IMG/VR virus record: IMGVR_UViG_3300030085_002431
Location: 124,001 to 188,000 of that record
Direction: 5' to 3' (one strand)
DNA: 64,000 nucleotides
Below, piece after piece: positions 5,717 through 43,801 of the stretch (positions are counted from its first letter, which is position 1; each line of letters starts with the position of its first letter). Below the pieces are notes generated by a model that searched no databases, was not told the origin of the DNA, and saw only the letters and a list, made by a program, of their open reading frames with translations. Position numbers and translations under genes: made by a program.

Positions 5717-5751
5717 TTTGCCTAAGGAGAGTTCGATCCTCTCATCGAGCA
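5679..5751 (+). tRNA. tRNA-CAT (elongator Met or Ile2)
   Basis: GCTCGAT/ATCGAGC acceptor, GCAAA-CTCATAA-TTTGC, GAGAG-TTCGATC-CTCTC; lacks initiator GGG/CCC stem. Confidence 0.92.
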
Positions 5752-5955
5752 TAGTCTTGGGATGACTTAAAAAGCACCCTGGTCGGGATGGGTTCTTACG
5801 ACCCCTCGGGTTTCTTGCTTTTCCATAAGAGCAAGTGGTGGAGCTAAGTGCTATCGAATATACCCCGCAGGATAAGGGTTAAGCCTGCTGGTGCGGACAT
5901 CTGCAAAGGTTTCTTGTTTTTCCTTACGTCTAAAAAAACAAGTGGCGAGCCTGCA
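5752..5955 (+). ncRNA. Structured cyanophage RNA, manA-like (manA/wcaG group)
   Basis: ~200 nt right after a tRNA and before a sugar epimerase; two GGTTTCTTG...CAAGTGGYG hairpin units, CTGGTCGGG/CTGGTGCGG motifs. Confidence 0.7.
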
Positions 5956-5963
5956 TACTAACG

Positions 5964-34158: not shown

Positions 34159-34200
34159 AATCAACGACGAAGAAGTTTACATTTCTTAATCCGTTGGACC

Positions 34201-34290
34201 ACACCCCTTAAACCGAGACCTCTAGGGTGTCAAAATTACGTCTCTCATACCAACCCTGGAGGGTAGGGTTGGAATATTATATTCAGTGTT
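34201..34290 (+). ncRNA. PhotoRC-II-like psbA leader RNA
   Basis: GAGAC/GTCTC stem, CCCT/AGGG pseudoknot potential, CCAACCCT/AGGGTTGG hairpin, upstream of psbA. Confidence 0.75.
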
Positions 34291-42413: not shown

Positions 42414-42673
42414 AACAATTGAAGGTTATTCACAAAGAATGTGATCCCACCCTTGCACAAGACAGAACACTTCCATACACTGCCTACATTGTAGAGTATG
42501 TACAGGATGGAATTACCAAGTTCGATATTGTAACTGCTTCAAAACAAGTAGAAATATTCGATTACTACTGGGATAACTATCGGAGTGACTTCAAGAATAT
42601 GACACAAACAGAGGGGAGAGCTAACCCCAAACTTTGGGGAAACAAAGGACCCTCAGATAAAAAGAAAAAATGA
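42410..42673 (+). CDS. Hypothetical protein
   Basis: DRTLPYTAY...GRANPKLWG. Confidence 0.7.
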   Translation: MKQLKVIHKECDPTLAQDRTLPYTAYIVEYVQDGITKFDIVTASKQVEIFDYYWDNYRSDFKNMTQTEGRANPKLWGNKGPSDKKKK

Positions 42674-42834
42674 AAGAGAAATTTGAAGATGTCCTGAAGA
42701 GAGAACTCAAAGCAGAGTTTAAAAAACAGATGGATGTCGATGTCAATGAAGCAGAACTAGATAAGGTTCTGAAACAGTACACCAAAGTAAAAAAGTCCAA
42801 TCTTCATGAAATCAGGAGACTGGACAAGTCTTAA
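42670..42834 (+). CDS. Hypothetical protein (54 aa)
   Basis: ATGA overlap. Confidence 0.55.
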   Translation: MKEKFEDVLKRELKAEFKKQMDVDVNEAELDKVLKQYTKVKKSNLHEIRRLDKS

Positions 42835-42847
42835 GTTAGATTAAAAT

Positions 42848-42861
42848 GTATCACATGTTAC
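42848..42861. promoter_or_regulatory. NtcA-type binding site
   Basis: (T)GTA-TCACATGT-TAC(A) = GTA-N8-TAC. Confidence 0.7.
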
Positions 42862-42869
42862 ACATGTGG

Positions 42870-42898
42870 TTGACTATATAAAAGACAGGGACTATAAT
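42870..42898 (+). promoter_or_regulatory. sigma70 promoter
   Basis: TTGACT-17-TATAAT. Confidence 0.85.
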
Positions 42899-42907
42899 GT
42901 CCTCATA

Positions 42908-43141
42908 CGTTCATCCTAATGCTCAGTCTAATACTGGCATTGACCTTAGCCCATCATGATGATGCTAATCCATATGGTTGGCATATGAGTTGTGAAAGGT
43001 TTTTAGAGAAACGAGTTGAAATCCTTATGGACGACAACTTGGACCGACGTGCAAAGTATAACCTTATAGGTTATTTTAAATCGAAGGTTCCAGGTGAATG
43101 CAATAGTATACTGACTTAGGACGCAAGTAAGTCGCGGAACG
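42908..43141 (+). ncRNA. Glutamine-riboswitch-like unit 1, ORF in P2 loop
   Basis: P1 CGTTC/GAACG; P2 TCCTAA/TTAGGA; CGCAAGTA junction. Confidence 0.7.
42919..43119 (+). CDS. 66-aa protein nested in riboswitch unit 1
   Basis: Hydrophobic N-terminus, Cys25/Cys61. Confidence 0.7.
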   Translation: MLSLILALTLAHHDDANPYGWHMSCERFLEKRVEILMDDNLDRRAKYNLIGYFKSKVPGECNSILT

Positions 43142-43144
43142 GAG

Positions 43145-43323
43145 CGTTCATCCCATGTTAGAATTACTACTCTACAGTAATATTCACTGCATTGATGCTG
43201 TTGAAATGATTCAACGCATTGAAGCAAATAAAAATGTGGATAAAGTTATTCGCACTGAGGTGATTGAGACCTTAAAGGAAGCAACACCTGAGTGTAATTG
43301 GGACGCAAACGACTGAAGGAACG
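43145..43323 (+). ncRNA. Glutamine-riboswitch-like unit 2, ORF in P2 loop
   Basis: P1 CGTTC/GAACG; P2 TCCCA/TGGGA; CGCAAA-CGACT-GAAG. Confidence 0.7.
43155..43316 (+). CDS. 53-aa protein nested in riboswitch unit 2
   Basis: MLELLLYSNIHC...TPECNWDAND; GGAG SD at 43141-43144. Confidence 0.7.
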   Translation: MLELLLYSNIHCIDAVEMIQRIEANKNVDKVIRTEVIETLKEATPECNWDAND

Positions 43324-43356
43324 GGGCTACAATCCCATTCTTTTAGGAGACCTACA

Positions 43357-43524
43357 ATGAACACCCTCAATCTCATTCGCAAGCAAATCGAAAAGCAGGC
43401 AGCACTGCATGACGCACAAATCTCTCATACCGCATATCGTGGTGTTGAGTATGACCAACGTTGTGTAGAGTCCAAAGAGACTCATGGAACTTTCTGCTAT
43501 CGTGGCAAAACTTACACCAAGTAA
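43357..43524 (+). CDS. DUF4278-like YRG peptide (55 aa)
   Basis: AGGAGA SD; AYRGVEY and CYRGKTY. Confidence 0.85.
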   Translation: MNTLNLIRKQIEKQAALHDAQISHTAYRGVEYDQRCVESKETHGTFCYRGKTYTK

Positions 43525-43528
43525 ACCC

Positions 43529-43624
43529 ATGCAACAATTAACAGTCGTTGGATTAATTTCCTTAGGTTGTATTGCATTTATCGGAATGATGTATGGTGAG
43601 ATTCTCCTCCTGAATAGGAGGTAG
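43529..43624 (+). CDS. 31-aa membrane peptide
   Basis: MQQLTVVGLISLGCIAFIGMMYGEILLLNRR. Confidence 0.55.
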   Translation: MQQLTVVGLISLGCIAFIGMMYGEILLLNRR

Positions 43625-43801
43625 ATGGAACACTACACTTATCATCATGATGATAAGGACAAAGATAGTAGACCACCAGCATGTTATCAACTCACATATA
43701 GAGGTGTTAACTACTGGTCCTGTTATCAAATCCACTTGGATGAATGGTTTGAAAAATTATATACAACTTCAGCATTTTCTGAAGATTTAAAGGGGAGGTA
43801 A
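43625..43801 (+). CDS. Second YRG-motif peptide (58 aa)
   Basis: AGGAGG SD; LTYRGVNY. Confidence 0.7.
   Translation: MEHYTYHHDDKDKDSRPPACYQLTYRGVNYWSCYQIHLDEWFEKLYTTSAFSEDLKGR

Follow-up and report, generated by a model that had tools for sequence, protein, structure and literature searches.

We have found that, in a T4-like cyanophage, two putative glutamine-sensing RNA modules of a kind that the literature treats as neighbours are folded one inside the other and share one helix, and that each also carries a small protein gene inside one of its hairpin loops. This conclusion, which we hold with fairly high confidence as regards structure, rests on comparison of about 180 non-identical relatives from viral contigs, whereas glutamine binding, cooperativity and the regulatory outputs are inferred. 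Full-text searches found no description of nesting, or of ORFs in aptamer loops, for any riboswitch, although prior mention cannot be excluded.

Anatomy of the element

The DNA that we analysed, referred to here as the window, is a stretch of 64,000 nucleotides, positions 124,001 to 188,000 of IMG/VR record IMGVR_UViG_3300030085_002431. It carries PhotoRC-II and two wcaG RNAs, and bases 42600-43700 match 420 Synechococcus and Prochlorococcus myovirus records at 65-75% identity, among them syn9 gp196-gp198, S-CAM1 and S-IOM18; the window is therefore from a T4-like cyanophage. A preliminary description of the region, made from the sequence alone, had pointed out two units, each with CGTTC and GAACG strands, that lack P3 hairpins of their own, and had noted that AGTCG in unit 1 and CGACT in unit 2 are exact complements next to the two strands of a loop-E motif. 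Direct reading of the sequence showed this observation to be correct, with every coordinate exact. The features are collected in Table 1.

Table 1. Features of the element and its surroundings; positions are those of the window
Position	Strand	Feature	Pairing partner or remark
42848..42861	+	NtcA-box-like GTA-N8-TAC (GTATCACATGTTAC)	upstream of the promoter; context, not part of the RNA
42870..42898	+	Sigma-70-type promoter TTGACT-17-TATAAT	-10 box ends 9 nt before P1; transcript should start within a few nt of the aptamer
42908..42912	+	Outer P1, 5' strand (CGUUC)	43319-43323
42914..42919	+	P2a 5' strand (UCCUAA)	43116-43121, across ORF1; last A is the A of the ORF1 start codon
42919..43119	+	ORF1, 66 aa, in the P2a loop	phrog_6471, like syn9 gp196; hydrophobic N-terminus, two Cys about 35 residues apart
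43116..43121	+	P2a 3' strand (UUAGGA)	contains the ORF1 stop codon UAG (43117-43119)
43122..43124	+	Outer junction CGC	C43124 is the outer linchpin partner of G43324
43125..43129	+	Loop-E 5' strand (AAGUA)	
43130..43134	+	Shared P3, 5' strand (AGUCG)	43310-43314
43137..43141	+	Inner P1', 3'-type strand (GAACG)	43145-43149
43142..43144	+	Loop closing inner P1' (GAG)	G43142 is the inner linchpin partner of C43306; G43141 to G43144 read GGAG, Shine-Dalgarno-like, 10 nt before the ORF2 start
43145..43149	+	Inner P1', 5'-type strand (CGUUC)	43137-43141
43151..43155	+	P2b 5' strand (UCCCA)	43299-43303; A43155 is the A of the ORF2 start codon
43155..43316	+	ORF2, 53 aa, in the P2b loop	phrog_504, like syn9 gp197; paralogue of ORF1; last codons (WDAND, then stop) read through P2b 3', CGC, AAA and P3 3'; stop codon uses the U of P3 plus GA of loop E
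43299..43303	+	P2b 3' strand (UGGGA)	43151-43155
43304..43309	+	Inner junction CGC-AAA	C43306 pairs with G43142; no loop E on this side
43310..43314	+	Shared P3, 3' strand (CGACU)	43130-43134
43315..43318	+	Loop-E 3' strand (GAAG)	
43319..43324	+	Outer P1 3' strand (GAACG) plus linchpin G43324	42908-42912; C43124
43325..43356	+	Tail with Shine-Dalgarno sequence AGGAG (43345-43349)	presumed expression platform for the downstream gene
43357..43524	+	Downstream gene, 55 aa, with YRG motifs	phrog_545; resembles DUF4278 / IF17

In unit 1 only 7 nt (AGTCGCG) separate AAGTA from GAACG, and in unit 2 only AAACGACT lies between CGC and GAAG, so that neither unit can form its own P3 hairpin. The P3 formed between the units instead encloses a 175-nt segment (43135-43309) that holds a second aptamer core and ORF2. 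The AAGUA/GAAG strands that flank P3 match the consensus of the glutamine-I (glnA) riboswitch, Rfam RF01739, and the loop-E description of the crystallised aptamer (PMC5393176). Loop E is present at the outer junction only; the inner junction has AAA opposite C-G in its place. P2a (6 bp) and P2b (5 bp) each follow directly on an unpaired A and are closed on the 3' side by CGN, as in glutamine-I.

Rfam scans of the window, at the gathering threshold and at E <= 10, gave no hit to the glutamine-II family RF01704 and none to RF01739, in the latter case because the 196 and 143 nt that lie between the P2 strands exceed the reach of the model. Also, the minimum-free-energy fold of 42905-43330, which is stable (z = -4.9), recovered P2a but not P3, and paired AGUC with GGCU downstream rather than with CGACU; it therefore says little about P3.

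Covariation of the shared P3

A 5-bp complement is by itself weak evidence, being expected about once in 1000 at a fixed position, and we therefore turned to relatives of the element. Pattern scans of viral contigs, which fixed only AAGTA, the middle GAACG/CGTTC and their spacing, returned several hundred loci, from which 197 and later 238 complete elements were recovered, giving 150 and 179 distinct cores, respectively. [quoted passage not shown] Many of the relatives are compact, about 81-103 nt, with short hairpins where the window has ORFs. Rfam scored these compact forms at 38-44 bits, against a threshold of 35, and aligned them as a single glutamine aptamer with a 38-39-nt insertion in P3.

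We observed 41 different combinations of the two P3 strands that keep the pairing, including AGTCG/CGACT, AGTCA/TGACT, GGACGG/CCGCCC, AGACAACG/CGTTGACT, and AGCCGACX/YGCCGACT with X:Y = U:A, A:U or G:C. In an alignment of 52 compact elements, P3 pair 1 was AU in 27, GC in 19 and GU in 4, pair 5 was GC in 48 and AU in 3, and pair 8 was GC in 27, UA in 5 and AU in 3. The whole structure was 94.2% paired in this alignment, as compared with 28-55% when partners were slid by 1-3 columns; 14 pairs showed changes on both sides, and none of 500 shuffles reached the observed covariation. Long P3 variants keep C.A or A.C mismatches at positions 3 and 6, and the AAA of the inner junction is nearly invariant in the alignment. 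Conservation of the 5-bp complementarity in relatives had been set beforehand as a condition for the proposed pairing; the pairing is conserved and covaries, so that the complementarity is far more than chance.

We also considered a single permuted aptamer made of the 3' half of unit 1 and the 5' half of unit 2. This reading was rejected because the P2 3' strand of unit 1 covaries with its own distant 5' strand and not with that of unit 2.

Nested topology

In the solved glutamine-II structure, the third nucleotide of CGN forms a long-range linchpin pair with the nucleotide after GAACG, and the same paper states that glutamine-I ends its P1 with an equivalent pair (PMC6698751). We used this pair to ask which strands belong together. 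The CGN of unit 1 pairs with the nucleotide after the 3'-terminal GAACG in 150 of 150 distinct cores (127 C-G and 23 G-C), and the CGN of unit 2 pairs with the nucleotide after the middle GAACG in 148 of 150 (106 C-G, 42 G-C and 2 A.C), whereas within-unit pairing holds in only 95 of 150. In a separate program-made count of the paired fraction, the 2 linchpins gave 100% (52 of 52 for the outer pair in the alignment of compact elements) and 95.6% in the nested fold, against 48.9% and 44.2% in the tandem fold.

Independently, 37 distinct cores carry CAACG together with CGTTG at the two middle strands, a G-C to C-G swap of the fifth pair of inner P1', while the outer strands remain CGTTC/GAACG. 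All 179 cores fit the nested fold, and 142 fit the tandem fold. Scans for the two half-swapped combinations found no locus with riboswitch context (0 of 53 and 0 of 23), as compared with 69 of 120 for the matched swap. The outer P1 helix itself never varies, and its partner is thus assigned indirectly, by elimination and through linchpin and inner-P1 covariation. By these criteria the first CGUUC pairs with the last GAACG, and the middle GAACG-loop-CGUUC is a hairpin. These swaps also block the tandem register; possibly, this helps to avoid a co-transcriptional trap.

The preliminary interpretation was supported in part. It had held that P3 and loop E are formed by one strand from each unit, and this central claim stands. 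Of the 2 alternatives that it offered, a strand-swapped and possibly cooperative sensor, or an outer aptamer enclosing both ORFs, the evidence supports the second. The first, in which P1a and P1b would be local tandem helices and P3 would form between the two linkers as a double pseudoknot, appears unlikely. About a fifth to a third of the family (37 of 179 cores at the fifth P1 pair and 55 of 150 at the linchpin) cannot form it without C.C or G.G mismatches, and it requires a more strained double pseudoknot with a 2-nt connector between two ligand-binding helix ends. However, GAACG(43137) is the first partner available to CGUUC(42908) during transcription, so this fold could exist as a transient intermediate. 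The preliminary description had also suggested alternative registers. These are possible for the window's own sequence, in which all four P1 strands and both linchpins are interchangeable and the tandem register is equally possible, but they are not a conserved property of the family.

We regard as very unlikely the reading that the element consists of two independent tandem aptamers, CGUUC(42908) with GAACG(43137) and CGUUC(43145) with GAACG(43319), each sensing glutamine on its own, with an incidental AGUCG/CGACU complementarity. Published treatments favour this view: the 2010 glnA alignment handles such sequences as separate units with the other unit left in the flank, and a 2022 survey counts 157 glutamine doublets as pseudo-cooperative tandems. 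Yet, neither unit has a P3 hairpin or both loop-E strands, P3 covaries between the units, and the 37 swapped cores would have C.C and G.G at the fifth pair of both P1 helices. True side-by-side tandems, in which each unit has its own P3 hairpin and within-unit linchpin, do exist among the loci that we collected (L138, L149 and L157 in our numbering), and the two architectures are therefore distinct.

ORFs within the P2 loops

The P2 loops of the relatives are either short hairpins or ORF-sized, and all four combinations of presence and absence occur, in 55, 60, 19 and 16 distinct cores. ORF-sized loops nearly always contain an intact ORF that starts 3-5 nt after CGTTCA. P2a ORFs stop inside the P2a 3' strand or at the UAA of AAGUAA, and P2b ORFs read through P2b-CGC-AAA-P3 and stop with the last P3 base plus GA or AA of loop E, which gives the conserved WDAND end. 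GAAG/AAAG variation in relatives keeps a stop codon, UGA or UAA, for ORF2. The GAG-type loop of inner P1' occurs only when P2b holds an ORF (38 against 0).

Pairs of P2 that span the ORFs also covary. In ORF-bearing relatives, positions 3-4 of P2a (TCTTATG/CATAAGA, TCTCAC/GTGAGA, TCCTAA/TTAGGA) were paired in 100% and 82%, against 79% and 45% in shuffles, and positions 3-5 of P2b in 100%, 100% and 92%, against 88%, 65% and 55%; in both cases 0 of 1000 shuffles were as high. The identity of the ORF1 stop codon covaries with the 5' strand (TAA/TTA, TAG/CTA, TGA/TCA).

ORF1 and ORF2 matched their PHROG families with E values of 3.5e-35 and 7.6e-23, respectively, and form one superfamily (hhalign of the ORF1 family against the ORF2 family, 96.5% probability, E 1e-9). 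Differences between relatives, by codon position, were 650/378/1106 for ORF1 and 6274/2611/9548 for ORF2, the concentration at the third position being as expected for coding sequence. Among ORF1 homologues retrieved by a protein pattern alone, 78 of 78 have CGTTCA within 16 nt upstream of the ATG and 76 of 78 have the aptamer core right after the stop. Pfam and Atlas searches assigned no function to either protein, the Atlas searches giving only viral hypothetical proteins.

These arrangements raise the possibility, which we consider very unlikely, that the conserved blocks matter mainly at the DNA or gene-organization level, as recombination anchors that shuffle small-ORF cassettes or as reflections of coding constraints on ORF ends, and that the aptamer does not function once ORFs sit in its loops. 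The occurrence of one ORF superfamily in either loop in all four combinations, the encoding of the ORF2 C-terminus by the core itself, and one relative (L608) that has lost the middle of the element are in keeping with this view. However, compensatory changes across 145-200-nt ORFs, including those between stop codon and 5' strand, show selection on RNA pairing in the ORF-bearing forms, and the core nucleotides are as conserved in ORF-bearing as in compact elements.

Genomic context

The promoter matches 11 of 12 consensus positions, and in most related loci the -10 box ends 7-9 nt before CGTTC. The GTA-N8-TAC pattern was present in 115 of 154 distinct upstream regions of related elements, centred 51-53 nt before CGTTC, as compared with 4 of 154 adjacent control stretches. 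Metatranscriptome contigs cover the region from 42885 onward and nothing upstream of 42864, and include forms with a TTCG hairpin in place of ORF2; this shows presence in RNA libraries only, and is weak evidence for the transcription start, since DNA carry-over is not excluded.

The position of the tail Shine-Dalgarno sequence is conserved in relatives, although RNAalifold found no conserved local helix in the tail. The product of the downstream gene scored 22.4 bits for Pfam DUF4278, below the 25.3 cut-off, and another gene at 43625-43801 likewise carries YRG motifs and matches DUF4278 below threshold. Of 93 distinct downstream ORFs in relatives, 92 carry YRG; all 10 that were tested hit DUF4278 as their best family, 2 of them above the cut-off, with scores that reach 51 bits. 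DUF4278 marks IF17 and IF17-like glutamine synthetase inactivating factors, the usual targets of glutamine riboswitches (PMC6212724). A scan of cellular genome contigs, which was swamped by chance matches, gave at least two real hits, both probably phage DNA, and does not establish presence or absence in cellular genomes.

Interpretation

In the aggregate, our observations are best explained if bases 42908-43324 encode one RNA domain at the very 5' end of a phage transcript. It is a glutamine-I (glnA-type) aptamer in which P1 is followed by P2a, the CGC junction, loop E and P3, and in which P3, rather than being capped by a loop, opens into a second glutamine aptamer core. That inner core is a circular permutation of the first: its P1' is closed by a 3-nt loop, it has its own P2b and CGC junction, and its strands enter and leave through P3, which is thus shared by two three-way junctions. 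A 3-nt loop whose first base makes a long-range pair is sterically tight. Each core keeps every nucleotide that contacts glutamine in the solved glutamine-I and glutamine-II structures (PMC6698751), namely the C1:G59-type end of P1, the G of CGN and the linchpin pair; nonetheless, lack of loop E at the inner junction means that glutamine binding by the inner core is not assured.

The helices, the nested topology and the coding status of the ORFs are shown here by comparison of sequences, with no ligand-binding, probing or expression data for this architecture, and what follows about function is inference and remains hypothetical. From the solved structures, we infer that each core forms a pocket that binds one glutamine, and that folding of the inner core stabilizes P3 and hence the outer junction, which would couple the two sites; cooperativity is likewise only inferred. 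From the anatomy, the folded, glutamine-stabilized state would mask the ORF1 leader and start and the ORF2 GGAG and start, and conversely, ribosomes finishing those ORFs would have to unfold the core. By analogy with gifB (PMC6212724), the nucleotide after P1 and the tail would control the downstream Shine-Dalgarno sequence and thus translation of the IF17-like gene, in an ON or an OFF direction.

A more far-reaching possibility, which we put forward only tentatively, is that many glutamine riboswitch doublets in the literature are in fact single aptamer-within-aptamer sensors with two coupled glutamine sites, which in cyanomyoviruses may physically enclose protein-coding genes. Glutamine-stabilized closure of stems that span 145-200-nt ORFs would then switch off translation of the enclosed small-protein genes while setting expression of a downstream IF17-like gene, and ribosomes finishing the enclosed ORFs would in turn reset the sensor, such that one RNA would integrate metabolite level and translation, with several outputs.

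Glutamine riboswitches are a structurally solved class whose frequent doublets have been filed as ordinary tandems. If the doublets are nested, with a shared helix and a circularly permuted inner core, they would be a natural example of one aptamer built into another, would give a new route to cooperative or digital sensing, and would show how aptamers duplicate and fuse. The finding also changes how such elements should be modelled and searched for, since current covariance models miss the ORF-bearing forms entirely. ORFs carried inside aptamer loops, with start and stop codons built into the stems, would extend riboswitch control from genes downstream to genes inside the sensor. The combination of an NtcA-like box, a putative two-site glutamine sensor and IF17-like genes suggests that phages read and perhaps manipulate the nitrogen status of the host; Syn9, S-CAM1 and S-IOM18, which are culturable, carry the same arrangement.

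Comparison with known systems

The closest system is the glutamine-I riboswitch (RF01739; structure 5DDP), with which the element shares the CGUUC/GAACG P1, the A-P2-CGN junction, loop E flanking P3, the long-range linchpin pair, and a position in the 5' UTR of a DUF4278/IF17-like gene in a cyanobacterial/cyanophage setting. It differs in that P3 is not a simple hairpin but leads into a second aptamer core, in that the long P2 loops encode proteins, and in that the Rfam model does not detect the window element at all.

The published tandem glutamine riboswitch doublets (Weinberg 2010, PMC2864571; Sherlock 2022, PMC9481103) include the same sequences, and the 2010 alignment contains GGAACGGAUCGUUCA-type junctions. 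They are described as adjacent, separate aptamers with pseudo-cooperative behaviour and multiple expression platforms, whereas here the two cores are nested, share P3, are separated by a 3-6-nt loop and have one 3' tail.

The tandem glycine riboswitch, with two aptamers and one expression platform, likewise places two homologous ligand-binding cores in one folding unit with structural coupling expected between them, but the glycine aptamers lie side by side and dock through tertiary contacts, whereas here one core is inserted, circularly permuted, into a helix of the other. The glutamine-II riboswitch (Downstream-peptide motif, RF01704) has the same ligand-binding core and linchpin and the same class of downstream YRG/DUF4278 genes; it replaces P3 and loop E with a pseudoknot between a 3' hairpin loop carrying GGAACG and the 5' CGUUC, and no such pseudoknot is present here.

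Finally, group I introns with homing-endonuclease ORFs tolerate long protein-coding insertions in a terminal loop, and natural circular permutations, such as hammerhead types I-III and two-piece tmRNA, show that the same catalytic or binding core can be reached through a different open helix. Those are ribozymes or tmRNA and not ligand sensors, whereas in the element described here the ORF start and stop codons are themselves part of the aptamer stems.

Sequences flanking the nested element

The locations of the features considered in this section, in the window and in related loci (designated by L numbers), are collected in the following table. The box-like sequence lies just upstream of the -35 box, and we observed the same pattern in 115 of 154 related upstream regions, as compared with 4 of 154 controls, centred about 51-53 nt before the aptamer. 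The locus may therefore be under both NtcA and glutamine control. On the downstream side, the 46-aa hydrophobic ORF overlaps the end of the first DUF4278-like gene and the match of the second such ORF is weak (15.7 bits); possibly, the riboswitch heads a small operon of IF17-like and membrane peptides.

Features of the window and of related loci
Location	Feature
window 42848-42861	NtcA-box-like GTATCACATGTTAC (GTA-N8-TAC)
window 42919-43119 and 43155-43316; many loci (e.g. L008, L036)	small proteins encoded in the two aptamer loops
window 43084-43171 and 43260-43347	the two conserved aptamer cores, with raised metatranscriptome contig depth
window 43484-43624	46-aa hydrophobic ORF
window 43625-43801	second YRG/DUF4278-like ORF
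window 5751-5956, 34189-34285, 1558-1628	two adjacent wcaG RNAs, a PhotoRC-II RNA and a tRNA
L113:586-780, L033:1640-1839	manA RNA, in some relatives, a few hundred bases from the nested glutamine element
L004:1451-1500 (syn9), also L016, L027, L049, L088, L097, L118	extra conserved element between the riboswitch and the Shine-Dalgarno sequence
L608:701-950	relative lacking the middle of the element
alignment A1 (52 compact relatives), columns 34/93 and 37/90	non-Watson-Crick positions in long versions of the shared P3
L115, L187, L195, L217, L219	joint A to G and C to U changes beside P2a
L138, L149, L157 (around the match positions of a pattern scan of viral contigs)	side-by-side glutamine-I doublets

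In 4 marine metatranscriptome runs, the summed contig depth on the 2 conserved aptamer cores was 10-100 times that of the ORF bodies. This difference, which is not a measure of expression, is likely to have arisen because sequences from many related phages pile up on these conserved cores.

Variation among related loci

The loop-encoded proteins are paralogues of each other, each with a hydrophobic N-terminus and 2 Cys about 35 residues apart. The same subfamily can sit in either loop in different phages, which suggests that whole aptamer-plus-ORF modules are duplicated or exchanged. In the relative L608, the junction, the P3 5' strand and the inner P1' are missing and ORF1 abuts an ORF2-like gene, and this locus may be a decayed or simplified derivative. 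The extra conserved element found in some relatives, including syn9, consists of AAACGGATCC, a variable hairpin and then GAGAAGGTTAA; it is absent from the window.

Two further observations concern the helices of the nested element. Long versions of the shared P3 keep 2 non-Watson-Crick positions (C.A or A.C, sometimes A.A) even when the neighbouring pairs change, which suggests a specific non-canonical feature inside P3. Also, the unpaired A after the outer CGUUC and the C of CGC change together to G and U in 5 cores, as compared with 144 cores that have A and C, an observation that is consistent with an A.C/G.U wobble that extends P2a.

Finally, the doublets at L138, L149 and L157 are genuine side-by-side glutamine-I doublets, in which each unit has its own P3 hairpin and within-unit linchpin and a 5-nt linker separates the 2 units. 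They are a distinct architecture from the nested one.
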